The position numbers and the translations under genes are program-made. The notes under the pieces were generated by a model. That model was given only the letters and a program-made list of their open reading frames with translations, made no database searches and was not told where the DNA came from. Source: Podarcis pityusensis (Eukaryota). Taken from it: DNA of 64,000 nt. Numbering within the stretch: the first letter of the stretch is position 1; the number at the start of each line of letters is the position of its first letter. Below, piece by piece: positions 10,843 through 61,230 of this stretch. The stretch lies in NCBI GenBank assembly GCA_964106645.2, contig OZ067050.1; one strand, written 5' to 3'.

Positions 10843-12117
10843 ATTGTTTTTATTATAAATCACTTAGGGCACAATCCAGCACAAATTAATTGAACTAAAC
10901 TCTACTATTTCAATGACAGAAGTTTAGAATGTTCAGAAGAAGGGAAATAAGTTGTAGTTGTAAATGTAATGGTTAATGTGTGTAGATGTGATAGTAGGGA
11001 TTTCCCCAAGAATTTTATTCTTTCAAATTTCTTCATGGACTTTCCAATTAACTACTCTTGTTAAATGGAAAACAAACACAAAAATACACTCACATGTATG
11101 GGCTCTAAACAATTGGGACAACTGTATATACTTTTGCTATAATATGTGATCCCTATTCCATGGGACCACACAAGATCACAGCAGAGAGAAATGTCCTCCC
11201 TCCCCCACTGTTCCACAAGACCTGGCACTGCCACCTTCCCTTTTGGGTGCATAGTGGTCTGGACTGGGAAAATAATGGACTTCTCTTGCCCTATGTTGGA
11301 CAGCAAAATAACACAAGCTTAAAGCCATTGATAAAATCCCATTAAAGCCATCATTGTCAGCATCCTAACACCAGGAAAATCTTTATGAAAAACATTACAA
11401 AGTGAAACTTTTCTAGAGCATCTCCTTGCTTAATAGGTTTAAAGTTTGGATATAGCCCTCATGACAACAGTGTACCATCGTAAGAATATGAAGCAAAGAA
11501 AAATCTCTGATAAATTTAATGAAAATAGAATTTTATTAATAAGTTGCTGGAATAGTAAACTTCAGGGGAACATATATTATTTTCATTAGTGTAAATTATG
11601 TTCCTATGATAATTTATTTTTGTGTTGTTTGGTTTTCTAATATATTTATTTTTTGCTAATGATATTAATATGCCAAAGATCCAGAGAAAAAGAGAGTAAT
11701 TTTGCAAACAGAAATCAAAGCTTCTCTCTGCCCTTCTGGCTGAAAATGCAGCATGTATTCTAGACACCCACTAATTCTAGGCTGAAGACCTGTAACAAAA
11801 GTGTATAGAAAATATAGGTGTAAAAATGGACATAATAATATAAACTGATTTATGAATAGAAATCATTACAGTAAGACAAATTGATATTATATGAGAAGTA
11901 GTGATATTTCATTTGAAAAAGAAAGCATTTTGAACTAAAGTGCTAAATTAATAAAATCCTCTTACAATGAACTTTTGGCTTATATTTTTTTTTGTTAATA
12001 GTTATTCTATGGAGAGCATTATTAATATTTCTTCAAATAAGTGAGAGTATAAGAGCCACCATTTCCAATCACTAAGTTTTCATGAATGTTGTTTTGGCAG
12101 AAAAACACCTGATTCTG

Positions 12118-36211: not shown

Positions 36212-37147
36212 CTACTCTCTCTGGAAGAGCCTTCTGCCTACTAGCTTTGCAAGAGCTTCTTTAACATCAGTGTTTCTCAGAGAGTATATGAGTGGATTGA
36301 GGACTGGGGTTACTACTGAGTAAAGGATAGCAATAACCTTGTCTTCTTCTAAGGAGTAGGCTGAGGCAGGCCGAAGGAAAGTGTAGATAATTGTGGAATA
36401 GTAAAAGCTTACAACTAAGAGATGGGAAGAACATGTAGAGAAGGCTTTCTTCTTCCCCTCTGTTGAGCGGATTTTGACTATGGTTCTTAGGATAAATCCA
36501 TACGATGTTAATGTTAAGGCACAACTACCTATTGCAATTAGCACAGAAGCTGCAAAAACCATCATTTCATTCAGACTTGTGTCTGAGCAAGAGATCTTGA
36601 ACATAGGTGGTAGCTCACAGAAGAAATGGTTGATGATATTGGAGTTACAGAAGGAAAGCTGTGCTACCAGTCCTGTGTGTACTGCAGAATTTACCAAGCC
36701 TATTAGCCACAGTCCAGCCATTGCCCCAATGCAAAACTCAGTCCTCATGATGCTTGAGTACTGGAAAGGATGGCAGATAGCAGCATAGCGGTCAAAAGCC
36801 ATGAATGCAAGGAGCAGGAGCTCAGTTCCTAGAGCCAAGGTGAAGAGAAAGACCTGTGCAATGCAACCAGGAAGTGCAATTGTCTTTCTTGGTGCAAAAA
36901 TAGTTTGCAGCATTTTGGGAACTGTAACAGAAATAGAACACACATTTATTATAGACAAATTGATGAGAAGAAAATACATTGGCGTGTGGAGTTTGCTACA
37001 CGTGCAGATGGCAAGGATGATGAGGACATTGCCTACCAATGCTGCTGTATAGATGAAGGTGAATGCCCAAAATATAAATATCTGATGTTCAGGGGAGCTG
37101 GAAAGACCCTCCAGGATGAACTCTGTAATGGTAGAATGGTTCTTCAT
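36212..37147 (-). CDS. OR13G1-like: Olfactory receptor, class II (OR13G1/13A-like), 311 aa
   Basis: ATG at 37147 (ORF-track start 37156 is GTG); NHS site; LHTPMYFLL, ALGTELLLL, MAFDRY, NHFFCE, KAFSTCSSHL, NPLIYSLRN. Confidence 0.95.
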   Translation of the reverse strand: MKNHSTITEFILEGLSSSPEHQIFIFWAFTFIYTAALVGNVLIILAICTCSKLHTPMYFLLINLSIINVCSISVTVPKMLQTIFAPRKTIALPGCIAQVFLFTLALGTELLLLAFMAFDRYAAICHPFQYSSIMRTEFCIGAMAGLWLIGLVNSAVHTGLVAQLSFCNSNIINHFFCELPPMFKISCSDTSLNEMMVFAASVLIAIGSCALTLTSYGFILRTIVKIRSTEGKKKAFSTCSSHLLVVSFYYSTIIYTFLRPASAYSLEEDKVIAILYSVVTPVLNPLIYSLRNTDVKEALAKLVGRRLFQRE

Positions 37148-38639
37148 TTCCAGCACTGTGACTCTGCAGACCTAGACAAATAAATCACTCTATGTAGAGA
37201 CCATACCAGTTGATAGGAGAGATCCCTAATTCAGAAAAGAAAACTTTCCACACGTTGGATTTATTAATAATAGCATATGAAGAAAATTATGGTTCGCATT
37301 TAAGTCAAGGGCAATAAAAAAAAAAGAGTAACAGGTTACTTGCTAAGTTTTAAAATAATGCTAGGCAGCAAATACTGTTCACAGGCAAGATATCTACACA
37401 GTGGAACTTACAGTGCTATCCTATGCACATCTGCTCAGAAACAAACCCGCTAAATTCAATAGGACTTAATCTAAGTTAAGTATGTACAATAGTGCAGTTT
37501 TACTATATGCAGAATTGTATATTTAAACCAGGATCTGAAGAGCAACTGAAGCTCACACAAGACAGCTTAAATAGGCCCAGTGTCATTTGCAACTCTCTTT
37601 TTTAAAAAAAAAACCTTTAAACAGCTGGTCCTAATGTGATTTCTGGTTACTTGTGAGCAGTTATTGTATATATGTTGTTGTGAAAAAAAATTAAATTGCA
37701 ACTAGGATTTGGAAGAAATTCAATTCAGTTCATATTTAAAGGTTGGCCTATCTAATTTGCAACAAACCTGAAACAACAAACCAAACACAGCCATTCTTCA
37801 AAATCTACACTTTCCAGATTTTGCAGTAAAATTCTGCATCCAAGTGATGTGTACAAAAATCCATACATTGGGATATAGTGTACATACAAATGCATATAGC
37901 TGTGAAATACCAAAAATATCCCTGCTTGAAGGGAAAATGTTTACAAAATACATATATTTGGGGAATTGTGTAGAATAATGTATATTTCAAGAAATTCTCA
38001 CATACATGATAAATTTTAATTAGGAGTTGTTTTGTTGTTTTAAGCAAACTGATGTAGAAATGTGGAGAACTCAATTTAAGACTAGAGGGACAAGAAACTA
38101 CAACTGAGAGGTGCCCCTATCCTTAGTTACAACTTTACCATTTTCTGGTCTGATTTTTGGTTAATGATTACATTGCCTGTTTTGCCAACACACCCAAGAA
38201 GACTTGAGATAAGAAATATGGGGAACAGGTTATATTTATTACATTATAACCATAGAATTTGCTATCAGAATAATCCAACCAAATTAACCAAAACCTATCT
38301 AAAACAAAGAAGGAAAGAACAAACCCTTACCTCAATTCCAGTTTTTTCTGAAGAAATGTTTCACAGTCTTCTCCTGAAATGCATCAGTGTTCATGTTCAC
38401 TATATTTGCTGGCTGGAAAGATTTACTGATATCCTTTGGATGTATTTCTAGGCAAGCCAATATTGTATTACCTTGATGCTCATCTGACAAAAGCATAACC
38501 ATGTATAATTGGGCTCCACATACTTCCTTAAATAGGGTGTGGATGCCATTGGGAAAAACAAAAGACATTTGAGATTTCATGAGAACTATAACTACAGCTG
38601 TGTCCCTATCTGGGCAGGGATAGCCTAACTTCATCTATG

Positions 38640-42595: not shown

Positions 42596-42877
42596 GAGCC
42601 AGTATGGTGTAGTGGTTAGGAGCGGTGGACTCGTAATCTGGTGCACCGGGTTCGCATCCCCGCTCCTCCACATGCAGCTGCTGGGTGACCTTGGGCTAGT
42701 CACACTTCTCTGAAGTGTCTCAGCCCCACTCACCTCACAGAGTGTTTGTTGTGGGGGAGGAAGGGAAAGGAGAATGTTAGCCGCTTTGAGACTCCTTTGG
42801 GGAGTGATAAAGCGGGATATCAAATCCAAACTCCTCCTCCTCCTCCTCTTCTTCTTCTTCTTCTTCTTCTTCTTCTT
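42596..42877 (+). mobile_element. tRNA-CORE-L2 SINE (Squam3-like) with (CCT)n(CTT)n tail
   Basis: A box TGGTGTAGTGG, B box GGTTCGCATCC, CORE-like TGGGTGACCTTGGGCTAGTCAC, L2-type GCCGCTTTGAG...AAAGCGGGATAT end; empty site in the paralog near 49665. Confidence 0.88.
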
Positions 42878-43956
42878 CCATGCATAACAGTAGGAAAGAG
42901 GTGGGGGAGAGGAGTCCCAAAAGCAATCAGGGCCTTCCTGCAGAACAACTACTCAACACTGAAACAAGCAACTAGCAAAGCTTGTACTACTAAAAGAAGA
43001 GGGGACAATTTGGGGAGGAAACTGATCAAATAGTCTGGCTTCCTTCCTCTCCTGAGGAATCCACCAGGAGCCACCTCTTGCCCGGCCTGTTGCTGCATCT
43101 GACCCCATCACTATTACCTCATCATGAAGCAGGGAAGACAAGTGGCAATGCCACATGCCAGAGCACCCCCACTTTCGCTGAATGTGGTGAGGGAGGCACC
43201 TTTTGCAAGGCTTTGATGTTCATCTTGTCTGCCCCAGCAGGGCACAATTTTTCTCTCCAGTGCTATTTAACATTGATACGAGGCCTCCTAAAGCAGCAGT
43301 TAAGTGGTGTGTTTCAAAATACTATCATACTGTTAGTATGTTGGTGACACTCAACTCTGTTTCTCCATAACGTGTGAATAAGGAAGGGCATGTGGGCTTG
43401 GAAACATTGGTGGGAAGGATGCGGGAAAACATGTTTAGCTTTAATCTTTGACTCACTCAGGCTTCTCAATAATTTTCTGTTTGCGAAAAAGGAAGATTAT
43501 TCTCCAATCTGGTGAGAAATAAGTTTGGATGACAAGAAAGAATGATAAACAAGATATAGCAGATTGTTGTCTGAGAGCATTCAAAGGACCCCTACTTGAG
43601 TAGGAACACGGTAAATATAGCTGCAGGCTTTTAGCTATGACATTGAGGAGAAACCAATTCAAACAATAATATCATTGCCTGTTAAAGCACTTATGAAGGA
43701 CTCCTCTATCTATGAAATCACATCGTTTCCTCTTCAAAAACCATCCTAGTGGTAAAAAGGATGATTTTAGTGTTAGCTTTTATGTATTTTTAATGAAATC
43801 TATTATCTATTAGAGAGAGAATCATGAAAGCCTGAATCATAAGTTCCGCAATCGAGTTCTGAAGAACTGGAGCATATTTGACTACACATAAAGAAATCAA
43901 ACAGTTTACTGTTTCCAGTTTTCAAGTAGTCTTTATAATAAATGTATGTAGATCAA

Positions 43957-44907
43957 TCAACCTTGAGAAATTTGAAGCAGCCTTCCTCTTCCAGTAATTG
44001 TTTTGAATGCATCTTTGAAATCTTTGTTTCTCAGTGAATATACGACTGGATTAACAACTGGGGTTACCACTGTATAAAGGAGAGAAATAAATTTGTCTCG
44101 GTCTAGAGAGTAGACAGAGGTGGGCCTGATATATGTGTAGATGACTGAGGAGAAGTAAAAACTGACTACAATGAGATGTGAGGAGCATGTAGAAAAAGCC
44201 TTTTTCTTCCCTTCAGTGGAACGAATTCTGAGGATACTTCTTATGATAAATGAGTATGATGTTAGAGTCAACCCACAGCTACAAATCCCAAAAATCACAT
44301 CTGCCACAAAAGCCATAGTCTCATTCAGACTAGTGTCAGAGCAAGAGAGCTTTAAAAGTGGAGGAACATCACAGAAGAAATGGTTGATGATGTTAGAGCT
44401 GCAAAAGGAGAGTTTCAGCATGAGTCCAGCGTGAACAGCAGAGTTGACCATTCCAGCAACCCACACTCCACTTGCTATTCCAACACATACTTCCTTCTTC
44501 ATAATGACTGTGTACTGCAAGGGATGGCAGATAGCAGCATAGCGGTCAAAAGCCATAAATGACAGAAGGAAAAGCTCTGTACACAAAGCCCATATGAATA
44601 GATACACCTGTGTGATGCAACCATAAAAGGAGATGCTATTCACATGGGTCCAAAGAATTTGAAGCAATTTAGGAATTGTAACAGAGATGGAAAACATGTT
44701 CACTAAGGACAGATTAACAAGCAGGAAATACATGGGAGAGTGGAGTTTTCGGCAAGAGCATATGGTAAAGATTAGGAGGAAATTACTGCCTAAAGCGATA
44801 GCATAGATGAATGTGAATAACCCAAAGAGAAAAGTCTGGAGTTCTGGGGAGCTGATCAGACCAGCCAGTATAAATTCCATAGTAACCGACTGGTTCTTCA
44901 TGTCCAT
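43957..44907 (-). CDS. OR13G1-like: Olfactory receptor, class II (OR13G1-like), 316 aa (main coding exon)
   Basis: NQS site, LHSPMYFLL, MAFDRY, NHFFCD, KAFSTCSSHL, NPVVYSLRN. Confidence 0.95.
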   Translation of the reverse strand: MDMKNQSVTMEFILAGLISSPELQTFLFGLFTFIYAIALGSNFLLIFTICSCRKLHSPMYFLLVNLSLVNMFSISVTIPKLLQILWTHVNSISFYGCITQVYLFIWALCTELFLLSFMAFDRYAAICHPLQYTVIMKKEVCVGIASGVWVAGMVNSAVHAGLMLKLSFCSSNIINHFFCDVPPLLKLSCSDTSLNETMAFVADVIFGICSCGLTLTSYSFIIRSILRIRSTEGKKKAFSTCSSHLIVVSFYFSSVIYTYIRPTSVYSLDRDKFISLLYTVVTPVVNPVVYSLRNKDFKDAFKTITGRGRLLQISQG

Positions 44908-46088
44908 TTCTCTGATGTTACTTTCCTAAACAAATGAATTTTATTAATTGTATTTCCTGAACAAATGAATTGTATTAATTCAAATTAAGGATCAAGATTG
45001 AGCCATATTGCCTCCCTCCCTGCCTCCTTCCATCCCTTCCTTTTGTGCTAAGTGGAGAAGATTGACTGTTGCTTGAATTCGATCATTTTAAAAATTATGG
45101 AAAGCTGTGGTGGCAGCAGCAGCTCTGGTGAGGAGGGATTTTGGACTTCAGGCAAATTGGCCATTTTGCAGGTTTTTCACCTGCCTCATAGCAATCATCG
45201 AAGCTTCAGGCAGATAAGGCCTTGGGTTGGATTTTTAGTTCAAGGTTACACCCTTGAAGGGTTTTGGAAAGTGCAGTTTCTGTCCAGGGTTCCATATGGG
45301 CCAAGGCACCCTTCTTTAAAGCATATTGTTATGATTGCTCCAATTTGATCTGTGTCAAAGAGTACAAAATGCCTAAAAACATGTTTTCAGATAAACTTAG
45401 CATCATGGCGGATCCTACGCTTGAACTACATGTCTCCAAAATCTGAGTTGCAAATTGAGAGATCAGAAGGTAGCAAAAGGGGCTACCAAACAACTCTAAG
45501 GTAGCAAAAGTGGCTACCATACAACTCTAGATATTCCCCTGTACAGTCACAGATGATGTGTTTGCTGCTCCCTCACAACAAAGTGCCATACTTCATTACA
45601 CCAAGCATCTGATATAAAAGGAGCATGGGAGCACCAATGGCAAATCATTCCTAACTTAGCAGCAACTTTTAAGGGGGAAATGATCTGTTTGTAAATCACT
45701 GGGAAAATTGACAGCGGTGCCAGTGTAAGCGCTGGAGGAATAATCTACATTAAAATTGTTGTGATTTTTTTGGGAATATATGGGTGAATATCACCACCAC
45801 TGGACATTACCACCATATGTGCCCAGCCTGCAACATTGCATCCAACACTCCATAGATAGCTCTCGGTTTATCTTTCCCAACTTGACCTATGAGCAATACT
45901 ACTAGAATATGACTTTGTACACATATTCTTTGACTCATGCCAAAACCATGCAAAGTGGAAGCTTATGCCTTCGGATTTCCATGCTCCCTTTAATAATCAT
46001 TTAAGAATCAATCAGTTTATAATCAGAGTGTACAGTTGTTTGTTGTCAAAATTATTAGCTGTAAGGAGGCAGGAAGATGAAATGAAAT

Positions 46089-46300
46089 TTTTACCTTCAT
46101 ATCTATTTACATTTTTGTTTTGCTCCTGGTTTTCATTTGTTCACTTAATTCCCCTTCCTATAACTTAGAGCCAATTGTCTGCTATCAGCCTGATGTCTGA
46201 TGATAACTGGTTTGATGCCCTTGTAGAAATCCTTTCCAGTCAAAGCGAGCAGCCCCATTAAATATTTCTTTATGTGAAGTAATAGTGCCACTGGGAGCAT
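46089..46300 (-). promoter_or_regulatory. First exon and proximal promoter of OR at 44907
   Basis: ATGAAG|GTAAA donor at 46095/46094, TATTTAA-like box near 46258-46267, CTCCCAGTGGCAC O/E-like site near 46285-46297; all conserved at 54190-54400 and 60043-60226. Confidence 0.65.
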
Positions 46301-46891
46301 GACATCACATGCAAGATTAACATTGCTAATCATATTTCTGATGCAATATTTAGATACCTAAGGGGTAATCCAGACTCCCTTAGAAGCCAAAGTAATAACC
46401 TAGGTGGTTCATGCCACTTCTATTTGTACTAATTCTACCACCAAACTAACAAACAGCTAACATGATGGGAGTGCATCAGAAATAACTCATAAACAAAACA
46501 CAGTATGTTCTAAAAAATAAAGTTATTGTTTTTTGTGAGGTGATGCAATAGTAATTATATTGGGCTTTTCTAGAAACAGTACTCAAAAGTCTTTGCACTG
46601 ACAGACGGAAATATCTGCAGTGAGACTGTAAGAGCAAAGTATTTTGATTAATATCTTTGTACCCTGTTTTGCAATTGTTGCATTATATTGTATACATAAT
46701 ATAAAACAGATTCTAAAGAAGATTTGGCACACAATCTTAAACTGATGATGGTAAGAGTGGACTACTGAAGAGGCTCCTCATGAGGCTGGAGGAACACCAC
46801 CCGCCGATTGTTTTATTGATTTAATATGCTGTAAACTGCTTTGAGATTTTTATTAAAAATATAAAGCGGTATAGAAATGTTTGTTTGTTTA

Positions 46892-47548
46892 ATTGCATGG
46901 ACAGGCGGAGTCCCCAGATCCCGCGCGGTCCCCCCGTCATGTGGAATAACGACTCTTGACAACGTGCTATGGATTAAATTGGCCACAACTTTATTAAATT
47001 TCAAATGTGGGTAGACCTTGGCTCAGGCATTGGGTGTTCTCCCTCCCCAGTCCCCAGCCGGGGACCTAGGGAGCATCAGGGTTATCCAGTGTGTGGGGGG
47101 GGGATGGGCTGGCTCTGGAGAACATATGTTCAAGCAGAGATAGCCGCCCCCGTTACGCCGCCGCATGGGAGAGCAATGATGACCTTTCGGCGTACGGTCA
47201 AAGCCTCCCTTCAGAAACCCCTTTAACTGGGAACCCTGGTATCACTGCCGCAAAGAGGAAGATGGACTAAAGGATTCCGCCCAAGGCCTGATACCGCCAC
47301 CCGAGGATTCCCAGGTAAGATCCTCCCTCTATTGTGTGGGCAGGTAATCCCTCCCCTACCTGGCCTGGTCTCCTTGGCAACGCTTCCCCCAGGTGGGATT
47401 GGACAACTGACTGAGGTAGGCGGAGACCTCCAGGTATCCCACCTGAGGGAAGGCAAACCAAGCCTATGCTGTTGGAGCCGCTCCAGATCTAGGGGCTGCG
47501 CGTGTCCACGCAAAGGGCGTCCCCCGTTTTAAGCGGGGAGCGGTCATT
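46892..47548 (-). mobile_element. Solo inverted copy of the 657-bp element
   Basis: Reverse complement of unit 33148-33807 with few substitutions; AAT at both ends. Confidence 0.92.
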
Positions 47549-47984
47549 TCTGCACTACCTTTACTTCCAATAAACTCAAGTTATGATGTTGCACTGGTGC
47601 CTGCCTGCTCTGAACTACATCAGTGAGGAACCAAGATGGGCAAAATGTTCTTGCTGGAAATGTCTCCACTGGCAGTGGTAGGCAGAAAGCCCAGAAAAAG
47701 AATATTTGAGGGACAGGATGCTGGCAGGTAGAGTCCACTGAACTAAAAGCTCTCCAGATCCTCCAAAGGCCCTGATCCTCAGGCATAAGGGGGAAACAGT
47801 CCCTAACTTCTATCTTGGTTGCTGTGAGCCTGAAGGAATTGCGATACACCTCCGCTTCTCCCTGAGTACACTCTGTTGTATTGTTTTATTTATATGTTAG
47901 TTGAAGAATTAAAGAAAACCCAAAAACAACATATGCAGCTGATGTATTATTGTTCATAAGCACACAAAGCATATGCATCTCATC

Positions 47985-49540
47985 TCTTTTTTTGTAAATA
48001 ATTTTTATTGATTTTCAAATTAATAAAATTCCAAATGATAGCAATTCAGATCAAATCTTGCCACATCATAATACAAACAAAGCCAATTATACATTCTGAA
48101 TTAAAAAATAAACAAATAAAGGAGGACTTCCCATGTTCTGGATGTCTGGAGAAAGTCTCTTACAGTTGTTCCTGCATTCACCTCTCTTGTTTTTCCCCAG
48201 TTTCATAAGTCCGATCTTAATCCATTGTTTTGCCTTCGCGGTTCCGGTGTATGACTCTCTATCGTGTCCAGCAAATCAGTATTTCTTTTAACATGCAGAA
48301 GGCAGTTCATTCTATGTTGTTATCCTTCAATTGTTTTTTTTCAGCGTAGTTCTCTTAATAGTCCCATCTTTCATTTCAACATTTTATCTTCCAGGCTCTG
48401 GGCTATGTTACAGCTCTCTCAGCACGTGCCAACTCTCCTTCTTTTGATAAGATTTATGGTGAAGCAGTCTTTCAGTCTTTTAATGAGTTAGTATTCCATA
48501 GTGTTCCAAATTAATGTTTCAAGTTAGCATTCCAAATGAATATCTCCGTAGAAAAGCAATGCTGTGGGGTATGTTTCACTATTTTTGGGGGATTGTTTAA
48601 TTTAGATCCTCCAAGATCCGAGCTTGCTCCCATGGGCCCTAGGGAAGCCTGCCAAATCCAAGATTGACTCTACTTTCACATTACACCATACAGTGGTACC
48701 TCAGGTTACATACGCTTCAGGTTACAGACTCCGCTAACCCAGAAATATTACCTCGGGTTATGTACTTTGCTTCAGGATGAGAACAGAAATCGTGCTACGG
48801 CGGCGTGGCAGCAGCAGGAAGCCCCATTAGCTAAAGTGGTGCTTCAGGTTAAGAACAGTTTCAGGTTAAGTACGGACCTCTGGAACGAATTAAGTACTTA
48901 ACCTGAGGTACCACTGTATATTGAAAAGAAAAGTTCATGCAAGTAAATAGAATTTTTTATGTGAAATATTCTCCAATTATTCCATCAAATGTTCTCAGCC
49001 CCCGCCCCTCAGAGGAGGCCATTTTCTTTTTCTCCTGCGCCAGAGCCACCACCATTTTTTTCAGCCTGAACCTCCTTAATCTCTGATCATATTTTGCCAG
49101 TTCTAATTAGGGCTCTCCACCGAGAACTGCACAGCCCAGCTTCTAATTACTTTTTACAGTTCCTCCTGCACACCATTTGGATAATTAATTCTTTCTTTTT
49201 GTGAGGTTCAGGGAATCATAAGTAGCAAATGTAGAGAAAGAAATAACCACTCACCTCACTTGAAACACCATGATGAAAGTCCTTTTTAATTCAAAACTTT
49301 GGCATCCAGTGACTGATTTATTTAGCAGGTCTTTTTTATCTCCTTCTTTCCAGAACACGCCTGTTTTTTAGTCCAAATTTTAATGATTTTTTTGCAAAAC
49401 AGGGATCCTCCTGCTCATGGTGATGACTCTGGAGAGTGCCAATTCATGCAGTGCTCCTGACCCTGAGTCCCTGCCCAGGCATTCTGTAGTGAGCAGCAGT
49501 TATTGGGCGAACCACAGGTGTCGGTCAGCCCCCCCCCCAA
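47985..49540 (-). mobile_element. Probable degraded non-LTR (L1/Tx1-like) insertion, interrupted by a MITE
   Basis: Begins with poly-T/TTTATT; absent from the paralogous block 42130-42465; family assignment weak. Confidence 0.35.
48691..48916. mobile_element. Tigger/pogo-like MITE
   Basis: TA flanks, perfect TIR CAGTGGTACCTCAGGTTA / TAACCTGAGGTACCACTG. Confidence 0.92.
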
Positions 49541-50627
49541 GCTTAAATGGCCCTCTGGGGTTCTAAAGGACAAAACAATGTAAGATTCCCACAGAGTGCC
49601 CTTATTTCCCCCAAAGATCTTACATTTCCTGCCTGGAAAGGCCTATTAAACCAATCCCATTAACGCCATGCATAACCATAGAAAAGGGGGGGGGAGTCCC
49701 AAAACCTATCAGGGCCTCCCCCCAGAACTACTACTCAATACTCAAACAAGCAACCAGCAAAACTTGTGCATTACTTCTAAAAGAAGAAGGGACAATTTGG
49801 GGAGGAAACTGATCAAATAGCTTGGCTTCCTTCTTCTCCTGATTGGGCAATCAACCAGGAGCCACCTCCTACCTGGCCTGTTGCTGCATCCCACCCCATC
49901 ACTATTACCTTATCATGAACCAGGGAAGACAAGTGGCAATGTCACATGCCAGAACACCCCCACTGTTGCTGAACGTGGTGAGGGGGCACATTCTGCAAGG
50001 CTTTGAAGTTCATATTGTCTGCCCCAGCAGGGCACAATTTTTATCTCCAGTACTATTTAACATTGATACGAGGCCTCCTAAAGAAGCAGTTAAGTGGTGT
50101 GTGTCAAAATATTATGATATTTAGTTTTAATCTTCCACTCGCTCAGGCTTCTCAATAATCTTCTGCCTGCCAAAAAGGAAGATTATTCTCCAATCTGGTG
50201 AGAGATAAATTTGGATGGCAAGAAAGAATGATAAAAAAAAAAGCAGATTGGTGTCTGAGAGCATTCAAAGGACCCCTACTTGAGAAGGAATATGGTAAAT
50301 ATAGCTACAGGCTTTTAGCTATAACATTTAGGAAAAACCAGTTACTACAATAAAATCATTGCCTGTTATAGTACTTATGAAGGACTCCTCTATCTATGAA
50401 ATCACATCGTTTCCTCTTCAAGAACCATTCTAGTGGTGAAAAGGATGATTTTAGTGTTAACTTTTAAGTATTTTTAATGAAATATATTATCTATTAGAGA
50501 GAAAATCATGAAAGCTTGAATCATATGTTCCGCAAACGAGTTCTGAAGAACTGAAGCATATTTGACTGTTCATGAAGTAATCAAACAGTTTACTGTTTAC
50601 TGTTTTTTAATAGTATTTCTATATATT

Positions 50628-50658
<31 letters not shown>

Positions 50659-50700
50659 GTGTGTACATATATATATATAATTTATATGTATGTAGATCAA

Positions 50701-51645
50701 TCAACCTTGAGGAATTTGAAGCAGCCTTCCTCTTGCAGTAATTGTCTTGAAAGCATCTTTGAAATCTTTGTTTCTCAGTGAGTATATGATTGGATTAACA
50801 ACTGGAGTTACCACTGTATAAAGGAGAGAAACAAATTTGTCTTGGTCTAGAGAGGAGTCAGAGGTGGGCCTGATATATGCGTAGATGACTGAGGAGAAGT
50901 AAAAACTGACTACAATGAGATGTGAGGAGCATGTAGAAAAAGCCTTTTTCTTCCCTTCAGTGGAACGAATTCTGAGGATACTTCTTACAATAAATGAGTA
51001 TGATGCTAGGGTCAACCCACAGCTACAAATCCCAAAAATCACATCTGACACAAAAGCCATAGTCTCATTCAGACTAGTGTCAGAGCAGGAGAGCTTTAAA
51101 AGTGGAGGAACATCACAGAAGAAATGGTTGATGATGTTAGAGCTGCAAAAGGAGAGTTTCAGCATGAGTCCAGTGTGAACAGCAGAGTTGACCATTCCAG
51201 CAACCCACACTCCACTTGCTATTCCAACACATACTTCCTTCCTCATAATGACTGTGTACTGCAGAGGATGGCAGATAGCAGCATAGCGGTCAAAAGCCAT
51301 AAATGACAGAAGGAAAAGCTCTGTACCCAAAGCCCATATGAATAGATACACCTGTGTGATGCAACCATAAAAGGAGATGCTGTTTGCACGGGTCCAAAGA
51401 GTCTGAAGCAATTTAGGAATTGTAACAGAGATGGAAAACACATTCACTAAGGACAGGTTAACAAGCAGGAAATACATGGGAGAGTGGAGTTTTCGGCAAG
51501 AGCATATGGTAAAGATTAGGAGGAAATTACTGCCTAAAGCAATAGCATATATGAATGTGAATAACCCAAAGAGAAAAGTCTGGAGTTCTGAGGAGCTGAT
51601 CAGACCAACCAGTATAAATTCCATAGTAACCGACTGGTTCTTCAT
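50701..51645 (-). CDS. OR13G1-like: Olfactory receptor, class II (OR13G1-like), 314 aa (main coding exon)
   Basis: Same motifs as, and nearly identical to, 43957-44907. Confidence 0.95.
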   Translation of the reverse strand: MKNQSVTMEFILVGLISSSELQTFLFGLFTFIYAIALGSNFLLIFTICSCRKLHSPMYFLLVNLSLVNVFSISVTIPKLLQTLWTRANSISFYGCITQVYLFIWALGTELFLLSFMAFDRYAAICHPLQYTVIMRKEVCVGIASGVWVAGMVNSAVHTGLMLKLSFCSSNIINHFFCDVPPLLKLSCSDTSLNETMAFVSDVIFGICSCGLTLASYSFIVRSILRIRSTEGKKKAFSTCSSHLIVVSFYFSSVIYAYIRPTSDSSLDQDKFVSLLYTVVTPVVNPIIYSLRNKDFKDAFKTITARGRLLQIPQG

Positions 51646-52601
51646 TTCAATAACCGTGGCACTGGTGTCCTAAACAGATAAATTATATTAAGTAGAATTA
51701 ATGATCCAAATTTATACATACACCATCCTTCTTTCTCTCTTTTTGTGCTAAAAGGAGAAAATTGGCCCTTATTTGACTTCACTAGTCATTTTTAAGATTG
51801 TGGCAAGCTAGTCTGTCATCATAGAAAATGTGGACTCTGAAGTTATCCCTTGCACTATACTCAGAAAATAGTCTCATTGACATTGAACATTACTAAAACA
51901 ATACTTCCCACTGCAACCCCAAAACAAACACACAAAAGATGGCCACTGCTTAGGAAAATGCAGGAATTTTAAAAAAGAACACTGCTAGCAGTAATTGCTG
52001 ACATTTGTATTACCTAATGAGGATGAGAACCACCAAGTAGTTTCAGTAAATGACACAATGCTTACCCTCGTTTATATCAGTTTTTGTTAATTGTCAACAT
52101 TTGTTGAGACATGCTGATTATTCCCTCCATTTCAAAAGGTCTCTGTGGCCATTTTGTTCATACTTAAGCTGGTTAATTAACTATATCTGAGTGGAAATGT
52201 ATTGCTGCAGTGCTGCAGGATTTGTACAGGTAGATGTATCAGTCCACTCAGGGGGATGTAGTCAGGTGGAGGATCCTGTGATTGCAGATACAGATGCAAA
52301 GCCTGACAAGGGCTAATTCATCATGCACAATTGCTTGTGCCCATCAGCTCTGTAGGGAGCAAGGCCCAATGAACATAGTAAGGCTTTCATCCAAGAAAAC
52401 TTCCATCAGATTGTGTTGTTTAGGGTGATATCTTGGATCTTTGTTCATAAAGGATATACTCATTTCACCATGATATCTGGTTAAACCAGTTTTGTGAGAT
52501 GTTGCATTTTTAAAAATTATACTAAAAAGGAAGTTTTACTAGTGAAATAAATAACACAAAAATACATTCAATAAGAGAGATACTTTATACTTCATACTTC
52601 A

Positions 52602-52675
52602 ATCAAACAATAATCAAACACAAATCATCAAATTTAAATGACTATTTGATGATTTGTGTTTGATTATTGTTTGAT
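52602..52675. repeat. Perfect inverted repeat, 32-bp arms, 10-nt loop
   Basis: ATCAAACAATAATCAAACACAAATCATCAAAT (52602-52633) and its exact reverse complement (52644-52675). Confidence 0.95.
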
Positions 52676-54188
52676 ATTTTATTCCTCATTGACAAAAAAT
52701 CATGTATTTTTTATTCTTCATCATTTAATTTGAATTGATATAATCCAATTGTGGTTTAATTAAATCCAGTTATACAACTTCTAACACCTCATTTCTATCA
52801 TTCAAATATCAACTCTTATTATTTCTGTTCTTGTTAAACTTGCCCTGCTGTTCCAATCATTTTTTGGGGGTGGGGCATATTCATTCATAGAATAAGCTTA
52901 TATCTTATTTTATGTATTAATAATTTACTGTGCTGTAATTTACTTTGCCACTCTTTTAAAGAAGGGTGCTCCCCCATCTCTCCTTTCAAATACAGTTTTT
53001 AACCACCAGTACCTGAGCAGAGACTGACATACTCACAATCATATTTCTACTCTTAATGAAATTTATTTCAGCCTCAGTGTTACATTACCCAGCAGACAAT
53101 CTTGGTGGCACATTCCATGACACTGCGCATGAAATACATATCAAAATATAATACTATATAAAGCCTCATTTTACAACCCCTTAAAAAGTGGTTTGAAAGG
53201 GGTTTATCAAAGCACAACAGTTTCTTATTTATATGTATTTATTGTGTATTTATTTCTTCCCCACCCAAAATTAGCTGAAGAATTACATTAAAAAGGATAA
53301 AACACTAACAATAGAGAATAGAAACAGGAAAACTACAGTAGGGGTCAACTGCTTGGTAATATGATGTAATTATTAGAGAGGAGCACAGAATGCCTGATAA
53401 CATGTTATCAGGTAAACCTAGCATCATAGGTGATCCTATGCTTGAACTGAATGTCTTCAAAATCAGAATTGCACATCAGAAGGTCAAATTGGCCTATTAC
53501 TGGTTGCCAAAAGTGGCCACCATGTTTCCTTTGAACTAATAAGCTCCAGATATTTTCCTGCACAGTCACTGATGATGCGGTTAATGCTCCCTCTCACCAA
53601 AGAGTCACACTTTATTCCACCAACGTTCTAATGTTAGAAGAGAATGAGAGGACCAATTATGGGAGATTTCTAACATAGCAGCTGGCAATAGAACAAGAAC
53701 GGATTTGTAAAAATGTTACATGGGGAAAAAAATACAAGGCGTTACACTTACTTCTGTAAAACAAGAAAATCCTTAATAAAATATTTTTAAAAAAGAAAAA
53801 AAGAATGAGCTCTTTGTAAATCAATGGCTTCATTTCCATTAGAGAAATCAACAGCAGTGCCAATGTTAGTTCTGGAGGGATAATCTGTAGTACAATTGCT
53901 GAGAATTTTTGGAAAATGGGAGTCCAAACTGCTGCCATTATTGGGCAAGACCCCCACATGTGAATAATATATGCCCAGCCTGCAACATACCATCCAGAAC
54001 TTAATAAACAGCTTTCAGTTTATCTTTCCAAACTTGACCAATGAATAATATCATTGGAGCACTACTTTGTACATATATTCTTTGACTCTAGCTGAAACCT
54101 TTTGGAGCAGGCGCATGTACCAGGGGTTTTTCATGCTCCTGATTTTATGCAACCGATTTAGGTTCAGAGGAAACAGATGAAATCAAAT

Positions 54189-54402
54189 ATTTACCTTCAT
54201 ATGTTTTTGCATTTGCTTGTTTGTTCCTATTATTCATTTGTTCATTTATTTCCCCTTCTTATAATGTAGAGCCAATATCCTCTTATCAACCTGATTTCTG
54301 ATAATAACCAGTTTGATATCATCGAAGGCATACTATCCAGACAAAGCTAGTAACCAGCGCTAAATATTTTTTTAAGTGACGAGATGGTGCCACTGGGAGA
54401 AA
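54189..54402 (-). promoter_or_regulatory. First exon and proximal promoter of OR at 51645
   Basis: ATGAAG|GTAAA donor at 54195/54194; CTCCCAGTGGCAC site; homologous to 46089-46300. Confidence 0.65.
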
Positions 54403-55002
54403 GACATTTGAGGTATCATCCGGGAGATGATGATTAATTCTGTTGCCAAAATAATTGCACATGTACATTTGCATCATTTCCATGTTTAGCACACTTGTCA
54501 AATTCACTTCCTATCATTCAACTTTTAGAAACCTGAGGCAAAATTCACATTCCCACTGAATTTAAATTAATATGAGTGTGTCCTTGGGTGAATCATGCCA
54601 CTACTATTTCTACAAATAAAGTTATTGTTTTTGTGAGATGATGCAACCCTAATATAATTGGGTTTTTCTATGAACACTACCAAAAAGTCTTTGCCTGGAA
54701 ATATTATAAGGTAAAGGTGACATAATATATATACACATGTAATATATGAATGAAATAAACAACTATATTTAAAATATGTGCATGTCAAGGAAAGTATTTT
54801 GGTGAATTAATTTGTATGCTGTTTTGCAGTTGCAGCATTATATTTTGTGCATATTATTTTGTGTACCCCTAAACATTCTTATTTTCAAGATAAACGAATA
54901 TAAGAACCAGGAGCAGGGAAGAGCAATTGCAGTCATCTAGCTAGTATTGTAAACACCTGAAACACTGCAGCTCTTCGGTTGAAGGAAAACAAAATTCATT
55001 TG

Positions 55003-55737
55003 TGTTAGGAGTCCAGGTTTCCAGCTTGCTAACACAATAAGTGTAGATAATTTAAAAAGGAGACTTTATTGCAAAACAAACAGCTCCAGATGGCTCTAAC
55101 AAAGCCTCCAGAATCATTACTCAAGATGACTCTTCTGAAGACTCCTTCCAGTGTCTACAGAATATATTGAACTTTCGCACCTTACATCTCTTGTTTTCCT
55201 TCCTGTCTAGCAGCCCTCCCATTCACTGACTGTGTGGACTTATTGGATCAGCTCCAACCTCTTCCTTTTCAGGGAGGCTGTCTCTGAGTTTGTTTGCGCT
55301 GTTTTGTGCTTCCTGTGAGCTTTGGCCTGCGTTCTAGCCTGCTCTAAGCTACAGTGGTACCTTAGGTTACAGACACTTCAGGTTACAGACGCTTCAGGTT
55401 ACAGACTCAGCTAACCCAGAAATAGTACCTCGGGTTAAGAACTTTGCTTCAGGATGAGAACACAAATTGTGTGGCGGCAGCAGGAGGTCCCATAAGCTAA
55501 AGTGGTACCTCAGGTTAAGAACAGTTTCAGGTTAAGAACGGACCTCCAGAACGAATTAAGTTCTTAACCCGAGGTACCACTGCACTGCCTTATCAGCCAG
55601 CCTGTCACGGTCAGGAAGAGCTGAAGTCTGCAACTCCCTGGCTCTCCCCTGCCTGACTAACATCTTAGTCTCTCTGTTCCTGGCTGCTTTCTGCTGTTGG
55701 CTGCAAACATTCACTCGGAGCTAGCTCATTCCTGACA
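55003..55737 (-). mobile_element. Solo LTR with nested MITE
   Basis: TGTTAGGA...TCCTGACA termini, 5-bp TSD ATTTG (54998-55002 / 55738-55742), AATAAA on minus strand near 55065. Confidence 0.8.
55352..55582. mobile_element. Tigger/pogo-like MITE nested in solo LTR
   Basis: TIR CAGTGGTACCTTAGGTTA / TAACCCGAGGTACCACTG. Confidence 0.9.
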
Positions 55738-55888
55738 ATTTGTTGTTAAAACTGGAACAGCCCATGTTTTGCCCTTCAGTTGTTTTTGGAGTATAGCTCC
55801 CTCCAATATTCTGTTACCATTGGCTATCATAACTGGGAATTGGACTCCAACAAAACCTGGAGGGCATGACACTGACTTCTGTGTTAAA

Positions 55889-56232
55889 AGGTAAAGGTAA
55901 AAGGTAAAGGACCCCTGGAGGGTTAAATCCAGTCAAAGGCGACGATGGGGTTGTGGTGCTCATCTCGCTTCCATGCCGAGGGAGCCAGTGTTTGTCCACA
56001 GACAGCTTTCTGGGGCATGTGGCCAGCAGGGTGCACGGAAACACCGTTTACCTTCCTGCCACAGCAGTACCTGTTTATCTACTTGCACTGGCGTGCTTTC
56101 GAACTGCTACATTGGCAGGAGCTGGGTCAGAGCAACAGGAGCTTACTTCATTGCAGGGATTCGAACCACCAACCTTCTGGTCAGCAAGCCCAAGAGGCTC
56201 AGTAGTTTATACCACAGAGCCACCCGCATCCT
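55889..56232 (-). mobile_element. Sauria-type SINE
   Basis: (AAAGGT)n tail at left end, head matching 3664 copy at right end; 40-bp flanking direct repeat. Confidence 0.9.
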
Positions 56233-56522
56233 AACAAAACCTGGAGGGCATGACACTGATTTCTGTGTTAAACCAATAGTTGAAAGAGCAAGTTAAACCT
56301 TGTTGTTGTTGTTAATTCTTTTCTGTCCCCACAGCTCCTGCCCTTGCCACACACCCATGTCTAATCTGAAAGGATTAATCTGTAGTTTTGGGTTTCCCAT
56401 TTTTCCAATCCTAAAATCAGCTCTACACATTTGTCTTGAAAAAAGTCCTTATGTAAAATTGTCAACCTTTTACTGTGGATTACTCCTACTATACATATCT
56501 GAAAGCATGTCTTTCCTATTAC

Positions 56523-56743
56523 AATAAAAAAAATCCTTCCAGTAGCACCTTTAAGACCAACTAAGTTAGTTCTTGGTATGAGCTTTCGTGTGCAAGCACA
56601 CTTCTTCAGATACACATCTGAAGAAGTGTGCTTGCACACGAAAGCTCATACCAAGAACTAACTTAGTTGGTCTTAAAGGTGCTACTGGAAGGATTTTTTT
56701 TATTTTGACTATGGCAGACCAACACGGCTACCTATCTGTAACT
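56523..56743. mobile_element. Penelope-like inverted pseudo-LTR insertion (perfect palindrome)
   Basis: 89-bp arms 56523-56611 / 56616-56704, loop ACAC; TSD CTTTCCTATTACA (56511-56523 / 56742-56754); same family as 1511-1813. Confidence 0.88.
56576..56613 (-). ncRNA. Minimal type I hammerhead ribozyme
   Basis: Identical to the motif at 1602-1639; a second copy on the plus strand (56616-56651) has stem I truncated by the inversion junction. Confidence 0.8.
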
Positions 56744-57480
56744 TTCCTATTACACACACTCTCTCTCTTTTGCAAAGAACTTTCTCTAATATAATACATT
56801 TTGTATACTATGTTCAGAAATATATGTATTTAATGCACTCTATCTAGTATATGCATATTTCTCCATATTATGGTTGTGTTTTGGGTTGCATGTTGTTTAG
56901 AAAAGTTCGCATTAGGTAGATTCAGCTTTACATGCAAACTGAATAGAATTCCCCCTTTCATCCCTAGTCCATACTCTATTTCAGCAGTTTGGGATAAACC
57001 ATTACTCCTTTGGTTTTTGTTCCACTTCAATTCAGTTCGAATATCATTTCAGTTCAGTTCAGTTCAATTGTCACATTTAACAAGGTCACTGTCAGGTTAA
57101 GGAACAATATGTTTAAGTTAAGTATATTCATGCTGGGTTCAGTGGCTAAATATAATTCAAAATTAACTTTCAACTGGCTGCTGATACGTCCATTTTTAAG
57201 AATAATATTTTTATTGAATTACAGAAAATTACAGTGGTTCTTGTCTTTACTCCTAAATCCATACACAATTGTGCATTGCATCATCATTGTTATTTTTTAA
57301 AAATTACAACTATGTGTGTCTTTAAAAGGCTTACAACTCACAAACTCACAAAGTGCTCCTAATATTCATTGCTAACTAGACAATTTGAAGAGATCCAGCA
57401 ACATCATCTGTATATATTGAACTTTAGATAATATAATGCACTGTTCCAAGTTACAAAAACAGGCAGAATATTAGGAATTA

Positions 57481-57725
57481 TAGTGGCACTTTGGTTTGCA
57501 ACCACTTCAGATTACAACCCTTTTGGATTACAACCACGTCAAACCTGGAAGTGTGTGTCCCTTTTTGGGGATTACAACCCATTTTTTTTTGGATTACAAC
57601 CAATTTTTTTTTTTTGGGGGGGGGGGGAAGAACCCATTGGTGAAAGCATGCCTTGGGTTACAACCTGTTTTAGTTTACAACCAGACCTCCAGAACGGATT
57701 ATGGTTGTAAACCAAGGTACCACTG
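57481..57725. mobile_element. Degenerate Tigger/pogo-like MITE
   Basis: TAGTGGCACTTTGGTTTGCAACC / GGTTGTAAACCAAGGTACCACTG, TA flanks, internal GGATTACAACC repeats. Confidence 0.8.
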
Positions 57726-58222
57726 TAGACTATTTCAAACATTCCATGGGACACCATTTCACAATGCGTGTATTGGAATTGTGTCTGCAATAACTACTGA
57801 AGACCTCCATGCTTGAGTTCTGCAGTTCTAAATAAGGCTAAGGCACATGAAAGGCTTATGTATGTGCAAAAGGCATGTTCCCCAATTGTGTGCACTGATG
57901 TACATGTATACTCTCTCTCAGAAACCCCCTGTATCTTTTTTTTTTTTTAAAGAAGCTGTTTATACACTGGGATACTGCCATTCTATACTTGTATTTTCAG
58001 CAGTAATACCAATGAGTTCAGGGGAGCTTATACTTAGGTTGTTTCCTAAAATAGATTGCTTCCTAAAATATGCTTATTATTTAAGCACCATGTTTGATTC
58101 TCAAGTACAAAATATGTCATCTGAAACATCTTACGTCAGCTAAACATAAACAATATCCTGTTGTCAACCTTTTCTTTCAGTTCACATATTTTTAAGTATG
58201 CTGCTCTAAAAGGATATGGAGT

Positions 58223-59167
58223 TCATTCTTGGAGTATTGGAAGCAGCCTGCTTCTTCCACGAAATGTCTTGAGTGCTTCTTTAAAATCTTTGTTTCTTAG
58301 TGAATATATAAGGGGATTAACAACAGGGGGTACCACTGTATAAAGGAGAGAAACAAATTTGTCTTTCTCGGGGGAGTAGTCAGAGGATGGCCGGATATAT
58401 GTGTATATGATTGAGAAGAAGTAAAAACTGACTACAATGAGATGTGAGGAACATGTAGAGAAAGCCTTCTTTTTCCCTTCAGTGGAACGAATCCTAAAGA
58501 TAGCTCTCATGATAAACAAATAGGATATTAAGGTTAACCCACAACTTCCAATCCCAAATATCACATCTGCCACCAAAGCCATAGTCTCGTTCAGGCTGGT
58601 GTCAGAGCTTGCGAGCTCTAAAAGTGGAGGAAGATCACAGAAGAAGTGGTTGATGATGTTGGAGTTGCAGAAGGACAGTTGCAGCACAAGTACAGTGTGA
58701 ATGGCAGAATTGCCCATTCCAGCAACCCATACTCCACTTGCTATGCCAAAACACACTTCCTTCCTCATAATGACTGTGTACTGCAAAGGATTGCAGATAG
58801 CAACGTAGCGGTCAAAAGCCATAAATGAGAGAAGAAAAATCTCTGTTCCTAAAGCCCATATGAATAGATACACCTGTGTGATGCAGCCATAAAAGGAAAT
58901 GGTCTTTGTGTGAGTCCAAAGAGTCTGGAGCAATTTAGGAGTTGTAACTGAGATGGAAAACACATTCACTAAGGACAGGTTGATGAGTAGGAAGTACATG
59001 GGTGTGTGGAGTTTTCTGCAACTGCATATGGTGAAGATGAGCAGGAAGTTTCCAGCCAAAGCAGTAGCATAGATAAATGTAAATACCCAAAAGAGAAGAG
59101 TCTGTAGTTCTAAGGAGCTGCTTAGGCTGACCAGTGTAAACTCCATAGCAGTAGACTGGTTTTTCAT
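58223..59167 (-). CDS. OR13G1-like: Olfactory receptor, class II (OR13G1-like), 314 aa (main coding exon)
   Basis: NQS site, LHTPMYFLL, MAFDRY, NHFFCD, KAFSTCSSHL, NPLIYSLRN; LELASSD replaces the usual LxLSCxD. Confidence 0.93.
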   Translation of the reverse strand: MKNQSTAMEFTLVSLSSSLELQTLLFWVFTFIYATALAGNFLLIFTICSCRKLHTPMYFLLINLSLVNVFSISVTTPKLLQTLWTHTKTISFYGCITQVYLFIWALGTEIFLLSFMAFDRYVAICNPLQYTVIMRKEVCFGIASGVWVAGMGNSAIHTVLVLQLSFCNSNIINHFFCDLPPLLELASSDTSLNETMALVADVIFGIGSCGLTLISYLFIMRAIFRIRSTEGKKKAFSTCSSHLIVVSFYFFSIIYTYIRPSSDYSPEKDKFVSLLYTVVPPVVNPLIYSLRNKDFKEALKTFRGRSRLLPILQE

Positions 59168-60042
59168 GTCAATATCTCTGATGCTGATGACCTAGACAGG
59201 AAAATTGTGTTAACTTGGTTATCCAGATAGAAACTTAGTTTTTCCATTCACTTTCTCCCTCTCTCACTCACACTAGAGATTTGGCAATTTCTTTCTTCAG
59301 CTGGCAAATATTTGTAAAGCAATTGTTCTTTCATTTGAGATCACAAAAAAAAAATCATAACTTCTTTTGAGTCTCATGGCTAACAATATACTTTCATTCA
59401 TTATTAAATTGGCTGTCTTTTCATTAAAGAGCAGCATCTACTATGGCCTAAATAACTTGTTAGTTGATCTTTATAACCTAAATTGTATTAATATTAGCCA
59501 TAGCATCTTATGGACTGCCAAGCCTTGAAATAAATAAATAATAAATAAATAAGGCCTAAATAACCCAATTTCATCTTTATATTCATCCTCGGTAAATATC
59601 AACATTAGTAAGAATAGGCTGCCTAAATCTTTCCACCAGTTTTTGAAAGTTTTCCATAATTCAAATTCTTCTCTAAGAGTTGGTTAATCAGAAAATAGTT
59701 ATATTCAAATCTTCTGTGTCCTTTTAAAAACACGTACATGCAGTCATCATAACTCAGCCAGAAATATCCACTTTTAAAATATTCCCATACATATCCAACT
59801 GGGCTGTTTCAAAGCCCTTAAATATAGATATATGTGAGTCTCTGAAAATGAGATGACATTTTTTGTGCAAGAAGTTAGAGTTCAGAGATTTAAGTGATTG
59901 TGTGAAAATGCTATGTGAAATACTATGTCAAGCCACATATTACAAACCCTTTAAATGGGGTTGGGCAAAACACAAGTCATTTATTATTCTTTAATAATTA
60001 ACCAATTTACATTATGAAGAAACTCTTAAGTAACATGAAAGA

Positions 60043-60228
60043 TTTACCTTCATCCCTATTTGCTCTTTTGTATCGTTGCTGGTATTTTATAACTTGGAGC
60101 CAATTGCCTTCTATAAGTTGGATGTCTGATGAAAACTGGTTTGATCTCATTGTAGACAGGCTTTCGAGGAAAGCTATCAGCTACCTTTAAATCTTACTTT
60201 AATTGAAGTGATGGTGCCACTGGGAGAA
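60043..60228 (-). promoter_or_regulatory. First exon and proximal promoter of OR at 59167
   Basis: ATGAAG|GTAAA donor at 60048/60047; CTCCCAGTGGCAC site; homologous to 46089-46300. Confidence 0.65.
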
Positions 60229-61230
60229 GGAACTCTGAGGCACCTGGAAGATGATGAGGATTTGTTCTATTCATTCTACTGATGTCAACATTTAGCCCAT
60301 TTTTCAAATACACTTATAATTCAAATTTCAATGTTGACAATGCTTCATTTCCAAAAAAAGGCAGTTTTCATTTCCAAAAGGAGTCAGTTTTCACTTCAAA
60401 CTGCACAACAGTAATATTTGCAATAATATATTGTCACTTCTTTTAATCTTTGCCATAATCTTTGATCCCTATATATAAGATTAATTATAGGAGGAATTAA
60501 GTGTCATCTAAATATTACTTTGTAGGTGTTTTGCTTCAAGATATGCTTTCAAACCCACAAAGTATCTAGTGGGATCTCTTGTCCCATATCTATCCCCCAT
60601 TTGAATTGATAGGTGTTCATTAACACATTTAAACCCCAGTGCATTCCAAGGTACTATAGAGTATTCAGGGCGGGGGGAGGCAAAAGGAACATGATGTAAC
60701 TAACAGAGCAATAATAATACTCTGAGGAAGGGGAAATGAAATTTAGTCAAACCATCACATCTAAAGCGCAGGCTCACTTAGTCCTTGTTTGGGAGAGTTA
60801 TATATCTCTGGGATGGAAATAAGCTACACCAGCTCTAGGACTGTCATAGTTTCAATGACAGATCAGAAGAATGGAAAACTTTTGGACTCTGTGTATCGAC
60901 AGCCTCTCCCAGCACACCTCTTTTTTACACTCTCTGACACCAAAGTTCTGACGTAGAGAAGCAACAGACGTGATTGGTTTTCTCTCCACCGGCAGAGAGA
61001 GAAATCTAGAAATTTATATTGTCCTTCAAAGATCTTATCAACGGTCATAGCATTAATTTATAAATTGACTTATTACAGGTTTATTTTTAAAATACCTAGG
61101 CAAAGGCAGGTTCATCTAGCCCCCATTTTGATGAATGAATGGAGGAAGGGAGGAAGGAAATTATACCATTGTTGCTCTTATTCTTGTTTTTACTACAATG
61201 ATTTTTATAGAATACAGGCTGTCTGGCTTA

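Follow-up and report, generated by a model that had tools for sequence, protein, structure and literature searches.

In an OR13G-like clade of squamate olfactory receptor (OR) genes, the start codon appears to lie in a short upstream exon whose last six bases, ATG AAG, are spliced in frame to the main coding exon. The genes considered here are located in a 64 kb (64,000 nt) stretch of contig OZ067050.1 of the lizard Podarcis pityusensis, referred to as the window, and the four receptor genes discussed lie in tandem, all on its minus strand. Genes 1–3 probably keep the ancestral split-start structure of the clade and, judging from the sequence, would translate the AUG of exon 1. In this arrangement, exon 1 would be a short 5′ leader that ends with the start codon and one further codon, and a phase-0 intron of 0.9–2.5 kb would separate it from exon 2, in which eight poorly conserved codons (the spacer) would precede the (M/I)KNxS glycosylation site and the seven-helix body. 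Counted from the upstream ATG, the M/I codon of this site is codon 11.

The ATG AAG exon in the window and across Squamata

The original prediction, made from the window, placed ATGAAG/GTAAA (the slash marks the splice junction) at 46100–46095, 54200–54195 and 60053–60048, with a TAG acceptor exactly 24 nt before the ATG of MKNQS in each gene and no stop codon in between. All these positions are correct, and translation reproduces the predicted spacer peptides ESNIREMD, DTSATVIE and VISIRDID. In gene 1, the end of exon 1 (46095–46100, the proposed start and Lys) is followed by the donor GT at 46094–46093, and a proposed phase-0 intron of 1169 nt (44926–46094), which begins with gtaaaa and ends with tttag, leads to the coding part of exon 2 at 43957–44925. 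There the spacer occupies 44925–44902, in-exon ATGs are found at 44907 (MD...) and 44901 (MKNQS), and the stop codon is at 43957–43959. Exon 1 of gene 2 ends at 54195–54200, with the donor GT at 54194–54193 and an additional in-frame ATG 12 nt 5′ of ATGAAG; the proposed phase-0 intron of 2525 nt (51670–54194) leads to the exon 2 coding part at 50701–51669, with the spacer at 51669–51646 and the MKNQS ATG at 51645. Gene 3 has its exon 1 end at 60048–60053, the donor GT at 60047–60046, a proposed phase-0 intron of 856 nt (59192–60047) with the same donor and acceptor as the NCBI model P0126 of P. raffonei, and an exon 2 coding part at 58223–59191, in which the spacer is at 59191–59168 and the MKNQS ATG at 59167. 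The acceptors read tttag/G in genes 1 (44925) and 2 (51669) and ctag/G in gene 3 (59191). Joined through the phase-0 intron, ATG AAG, the open 24-nt spacer and the receptor ORF (open reading frame) form an intact reading frame from the upstream exon to the main exon in all three genes.

The coding sequences (CDS) of genes 4, 1, 2 and 3, at 36212–37147, 43957–44907, 50701–51645 and 58223–59167, are intact ORFs of 314–316 residues. When the exons were translated and searched separately, all four genes gave 161–172 bits with Pfam 7tm_4 (cut-off 27) and 118–132 bits with 7tm_1. Each has an NQS or NHS sequon at residues 3–5, HSPMYFLL or HTPMYFLL, and MAFDRY. Their closest relatives are squamate OR13G1/13A1-like proteins, with identities of 93–99% in Podarcis, Lacerta and Zootoca and 63–83% in Rhineura, gecko, skink, anole and snake. 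The exon 2 translation of gene 3 is 99% identical to P. raffonei and P. muralis models, and genes 1 and 2 are 94–97% identical to Podarcis and Lacerta models. A look-up by exact sequence gave no identical entry in the protein collection for any of the four. The blocks upstream of genes 1–3, which had been described as otherwise diverged, are homologous, yet diverged among the three. On both strands of the window, ATGAAGGTA has three matches only, the sites of genes 1–3, and a 19-nt junction pattern with up to three mismatches matches the same three sites only.

For comparison, 11 loci were used, from ten named species and an unlabelled Logan contig: the lacertids P. raffonei, P. muralis, Lacerta agilis and Zootoca vivipara, the python Liasis olivaceus, the geckos Eublepharis and Heteronotia, the amphisbaenian Rhineura, Anolis carolinensis and the skink Tiliqua. 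In these loci and in the window, all OR13G-like genes have a YAG acceptor precisely 24 nt ahead of the M/I codon, and the frame between is open and free of insertions and deletions. This applies to all genes that have 63% identity or more to gene 3. ATGAAG/GT is present upstream, on the gene strand, in Podarcis genes 1–3, in P. muralis, Lacerta and Zootoca, in two genes of Liasis, and in Eublepharis, Heteronotia, Anolis, Rhineura and Tiliqua. The exon ends 0.7–9 kb upstream, and the donor is mostly GTAAAT, with GTAAGT in Eublepharis and GTGAGT in Tiliqua. Conservation of the ATG in orthologues, which the original prediction had proposed as a check, is seen with the junction in 10 of 11 lacertid sequences and in every distant lineage sampled (python, two geckos, anole, skink and amphisbaenian); the lone failure is gene 3 of P. 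raffonei. For gene 1, ATGAAG is kept both in the Zootoca orthologue and in distant squamates.

These comparisons bear on the simplest alternative, that the three ATGAAG/GT sites and their open spacers are a coincidence among recent tandem duplicates. Eight random codons stay open about 60–68% of the time, and given the common descent of the three genes the window by itself is poor proof. The same junction, however, recurs in several squamate families; the 12-mer ATGAAGGTAAAT has 12 exact matches in 8 of the 11 loci, on the gene strand every time, whereas chance, roughly estimated, would give far fewer than one match over both strands of the loci, about 230 kb in all; and within the window the three matches to the junction pattern compare with 0.08 expected from shuffles. 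Chance is already refuted as an explanation and has next to no probability left. The upstream ATG AAG, the phase-0 intron and the 24-nt in-frame spacer thus appear to occur across Squamata, well beyond lacertids, and the window genes would therefore carry the ancestral split-start structure of the squamate OR13G-like clade.

An argument that the ATG is a start codon comes from relatives without Met at codon 11. Many RefSeq models, those of python, Eublepharis and Rhineura among them, have Ile, Arg or Thr at codon 11, and the genes of Liasis, Eublepharis and Rhineura that were read have ATA or AGA there. The acceptor's TAG doubles as an in-frame stop codon in Eublepharis, in Rhineura and in one Liasis gene out of three. 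The remaining two of Liasis carry CAG acceptors and have 14 open codons, and the exon 2 part of their models contains no earlier Met. The next Met is at residue 54–67, in the PMYF motif behind the first transmembrane helix (TM1), in 10 of the 14 non-Met models checked. Since codon 11 is not Met and the next Met is behind TM1, the ATG of exon 1 is the only usable start in those genes. Without it they could not encode a receptor that includes the glycosylation site and the first helix, yet their ORFs are intact. Among 128 relatives, 24 have models that consist of exactly M, one residue (K, Q, E, R and others) and eight residues ahead of codon 11, a form more frequent than any other extended one. 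In a tree of 102 proteins, calculated with the N-terminus left out, at least 15 changes between Met and non-Met have taken place at codon 11, and 70 of the 102 sampled models are without Met there. Met-11 itself is thus poorly conserved and the in-exon Met appears dispensable, while the upstream ATG is the constant. On the sequences compared, the upstream ATG is shown to be indispensable in relatives that lack Met-11.

Alternatively, ATGAAGGTAA might owe its conservation solely to a role in splicing, as a donor with an exonic enhancer, or to a regulatory role close to the promoter, with the in-frame ATG incidental. AAG/GTAA is a near-consensus donor that would be conserved in any case, and the spacer gives no sign of constraint at the peptide level. 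In alignment A1 (236 nt, nine genes from six families, 54% mean identity), the sole invariant run is A-ATGAAGGTAA. The splice-donor consensus spans −3 to +6, and the invariant run goes three bases past it, precisely over the ATG at −6 to −4, so that splicing does not account for the ATG. Moreover, the spacer has a fixed length, a multiple of three, in all genes, and in the genes whose codon 11 is Ile, Arg or Thr any other start would lose the glycosylation site and TM1, although their ORFs are intact. An incidental ATG is accordingly very improbable.

Three Rhineura models (P0004, P0006 and P0016) begin with METAIK followed by the spacer. The IK could be what is left of ATG-AAG after a change to ATA-AAG, and a new ATG would then have arisen in frame, four codons 5′ of it. 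The in-frame start in exon 1 of Rhineura would in that case have been kept by replacement.

Use of the upstream AUG in Podarcis

The window genes differ from these relatives in that they have an ATG at codon 11, so that two products are conceivable. On the spliced mRNA, a scanning ribosome would reach the AUG of exon 1 first, and a start there would give a receptor of 324 residues, with an extracellular tail longer by ten. Met-11 would be reached by leaky scanning, or on a transcript that lacks exon 1, and would give the 314-residue form of single-exon annotation. Use of the junction and translation of the upstream AUG in Podarcis are what we infer, and the extended form is probably a substantial product. 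By the scanning rule, a large share of ribosomes would be captured by an AUG that precedes Met-11 and has a purine at −3. The ATG of ATGAAG has a purine at −3 in eight of nine genes, including genes 1 and 3; gene 2 has a C. Most ATGs in the last 130 nt of the leaders, whose frames were followed by script, are closed by a stop codon before ATGAAG.

Several observations weigh against this interpretation. All four window genes have a Met-11 ATG of their own, in good context with G at −3, and with it a single-exon ORF of 314 aa, and lacertid annotations start the orthologues of the window genes inside exon 2 (314–316 aa), P0126 excepted. In the P. raffonei orthologue of gene 3 the junction reads GATAAG/GT (L001:10085–10105, window 60053–60045) where the window has GATGAAG/GT. 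This 1-nt deletion has removed the ATG while the ORF is intact, so that at least one Met-11 gene can do without the upstream ATG. The model P0126 (356 aa) begins instead at a far-upstream ATG (MRSNQF..., at about 60150 of the window), which is in frame through the same deletion. In gene 2, besides the C at −3 and the in-frame ATG 12 nt upstream, one out-of-frame upstream ATG reads past the start. The models of other species are automatic predictions. In four sister-species RNA runs of unknown tissue, aligned over 54190–60189, the depth was zero for gene 3 as well as for exon 1 of gene 2. Since ORs are silent outside the nose, zero depth in runs of such origin is uninformative either way.

The spacer is the remaining point of this kind. 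In a codon-position test on the 24 nt, the eight codons are variable, the second positions change most, and there is no excess of change at third positions. Nothing therefore argues for selection on the spacer peptide itself, and purifying selection on it was dropped as an explanation. What is retained across genes is the length and frame of the spacer, not its peptide sequence. The extension would act as a free linker at the N-terminus, in front of the NxS sequon, and any role for it in trafficking or translation is speculation.

Taken together, such observations could mean that the upstream ATG is a relic in lacertids. The exon and the junction would be real, with initiation moved to the Met of exon 2, and the AUG of exon 1 would be merely an in-frame leader AUG, at most the source of a minor extended isoform or a damper of translation, which has survived through short time or through its adjacency to the donor. 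Met-11 with its G at −3 in all four genes and the intact receptor of P. raffonei gene 3 fit this idea. Since the lacertid orthologues are 93–99% identical in the block, conservation of the ATG among them says little. Leader AUGs are also known from mouse, whose coding ORs have upstream ORFs (uORFs) in 86% of cases and in-frame upstream ATGs in 21.5%, and the latter were deliberately not called split (Barnes et al. 2020, BMC Genomics 21:196, PMC7055050). Genes 1–3, however, are old paralogues whose leaders have strongly diverged and in which ATGAAG is kept, and the Met-11 genes of Heteronotia and Anolis retain it likewise. All ten Met-11 genes sampled hold the 24-nt length and the open frame, and the scanning rule gives the AUG with a purine at −3 its large share of ribosomes. 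A relic ATG is therefore the less likely reading, at something like one chance among four, and continued use of the upstream AUG is preferred.

The original prediction as a whole is thus partly supported. Its claim that a clade of lizard ORs carries an N-terminal extension stands as to structure, which is wider than was claimed and extends over Squamata, while splicing and translation in Podarcis itself stay at the level of inference.

A search of sequencing runs for this stretch returned, besides the sister-species RNA runs, matching runs of DNA only. The RNA runs do have reads at 55190–56789, with a depth of up to about 1000, of which 97% run into unlike sequence, with identities mostly of 90–99%. 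They mark interspersed repeats of a transcribed family that lies between genes 2 and 3, and do not indicate a local gene. The Logan contig L008, considered as a transcript, was rejected because it is genomic, with the intron acceptor intact, and a Logan look-up with the Varanus model P0048 gave no match.

Gene 4, leader elements and neighbouring loci

Gene 4 is a more distant paralogue, with an exon 2 part at 36212–37171 and its MKNHS ATG at 37147. As had been predicted, it keeps the 24-nt spacer with a different sequence (37171–37148, open, VCRVTVLE), behind the same ctag/G acceptor as gene 3, at 37171. No ATGAAG/GT exon for it was found within 8 kb upstream. A candidate first exon ending in AAG/GTAATA is located at 38472–38502, where the NCBI model of the P. 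muralis orthologue (365 aa) begins. This candidate exon has three ATGs, and a direct splice to 37171 would put only the last of them (38483–38481) in frame and leave two out of frame. An Anolis gene with a gene-4-like MKNHS start has ATGAAG/GTAAAT 6.4 kb upstream (L009:12039). Since that gene keeps the ATGAAG exon, the lacertid gene 4 may have exchanged its first exon for another.

Upstream of the start exon, the box ATTGGCTC is found at 46168–46175 in gene 1, at 54276–54269 in gene 2 and at 60104–60097 in gene 3. In python and Rhineura the box has an equivalent relative position, and in Eublepharis nearly the equivalent one; it is possibly a promoter element or part of the leader. Blocks shared by the paralogues cover 60097–60253, 54269–54400 and 46168–46300, and some of them are also found in python, Eublepharis and Rhineura. 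Their order is TCTCCCAGTGGCAC, then TCAATTAA or TCACTTAA, a block like AGAAAGATTTC, ATCAGAC and ATTGGCTC. These blocks appear to resemble the O/E-like and homeodomain sites of mammalian OR promoters, and an NF-Y or NFI half-site.

In P. muralis a single gene stands in place of the window's genes 2 and 1 (window 42847–53699, L002:7946–12052). The 5′ part and CDS of this single gene are 98% identical to gene 2, its CDS and 3′ flank are 94.6% identical to gene 1, and the Zootoca locus has a leader of the gene 1 type. This suggests that P. muralis lost a gene by an unequal crossing-over deletion, rather than that a new duplication took place in the window species. The window also has three further intact ORs of other families, at 2080–3018 on the minus strand and at 12082–13080 and 17767–18738 on the plus strand, which are 41–46% identical to gene 3. 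None of the three has an acceptor 24 nt before the start region, and two have longer N-termini within the exon.

Relation to mammalian split receptors

The known counterparts are the split ORs of mammals, of which Barnes et al. (PMC7055050) curated 13 in human and 41 in mouse, with the CDS over two exons. Their initiator Met is in the upstream exon and the intron is mostly in the N-terminal tail; in one class, split and single-exon isoforms differ by 3–15 N-terminal residues (PMC7055050). The squamate genes are alike in having the start in an upstream exon, the intron in the extracellular N-terminal tail, and a conserved Met and junction. They differ in that exon 1 gives two codons only, and very short upstream coding parts are, according to Barnes et al., hard to trace (PMC7055050). 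They differ also in distribution: the mouse split ORs represent 23 separate events in small clusters only (PMC7055050), whereas the squamate structure appears common to a whole clade, from geckos, skinks, lacertids and amphisbaenians to anoles and snakes.

Barnes et al. left out genes in which a conserved downstream Met gives a full-length single-exon ORF (PMC7055050). The Podarcis genes, with Met-11 and a 314-aa ORF, fail this strict filter, and their structure is here predicted from sequence, in contrast to the curated mammalian genes. The python, Eublepharis and Rhineura genes that were read pass it, as do most of the 14 non-Met models. Like the in-frame AUGs and uORFs of mouse leaders, the squamate AUG precedes the annotated start and belongs to a 5′ exon, in a leader with short uORFs. 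It does not vary, however, over about six squamate families, and many relatives have no other usable start; for these reasons it would not be an incidental leader AUG.

Existing annotations already contain part of this structure. NCBI 13G1-like models of snakes, geckos, Varanus, Tiliqua and Rhineura (for example P0073 of Liasis, P0069 of Eublepharis and P0078 of Tiliqua) begin with M, then K, Q or E, then eight residues and (I/M)KNxS, and their first two codons are placed on the ATGAAG exon wherever the DNA was read. NCBI models of other paralogues, in contrast, have assorted long and inconsistent extensions. Human OR13G1 likewise has two exons, of which the first is short and non-coding (HAVANA coordinates, supplement of PMC7055050). 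Its acceptor is 238 nt before the ATG and its CDS lies wholly in exon 2, unlike the squamate genes, so that the split start is not common to the human namesake, a namesake by name without implied orthology. A literature search found no paper describing the squamate split start, which is weak evidence of absence since coverage of subscription journals was poor; a 2025 rattlesnake study states that ORs typically have their entire CDS in one exon.

The squamate layout would therefore belong with the split start codons that Barnes et al. curated in mouse and human (PMC7055050), here clade-wide, old and two codons long. It would extend the mammalian finding to an old, clade-wide case and leave knowledge of the receptor mechanism unchanged. 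Its main consequence is for gene counts and gene models. Functional OR counts in reptiles come from pipelines that require a complete single-exon ORF (e.g. PMC10869828). Many genes of the clade have no ATG in the main exon, and they would score as truncated in such pipelines, or be started at a wrong Met behind TM1. For the lacertids, annotated proteins may be missing their first ten residues. The conserved ATG-AAG exon would provide a simple rule for the correction of gene models across Squamata, and would also mark the location of the promoter.

A bolder reading is that the ATG AAG stub has been the obligatory start of the whole expanding squamate clade since before geckos split off, with the eight-residue linker functional in itself. 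The gecko split from other squamates is roughly 200 million years old. This reading is tentative, and rather doubtful as it stands. If it is true, single-exon OR mining would misclassify the majority of the clade (70 of 102 models are without Met-11) as truncated genes or pseudogenes, and a linker constrained in frame only, free in sequence, would have a function of its own, for example in spacing the sequon from the N-terminus or in coupling translation to correct splicing.

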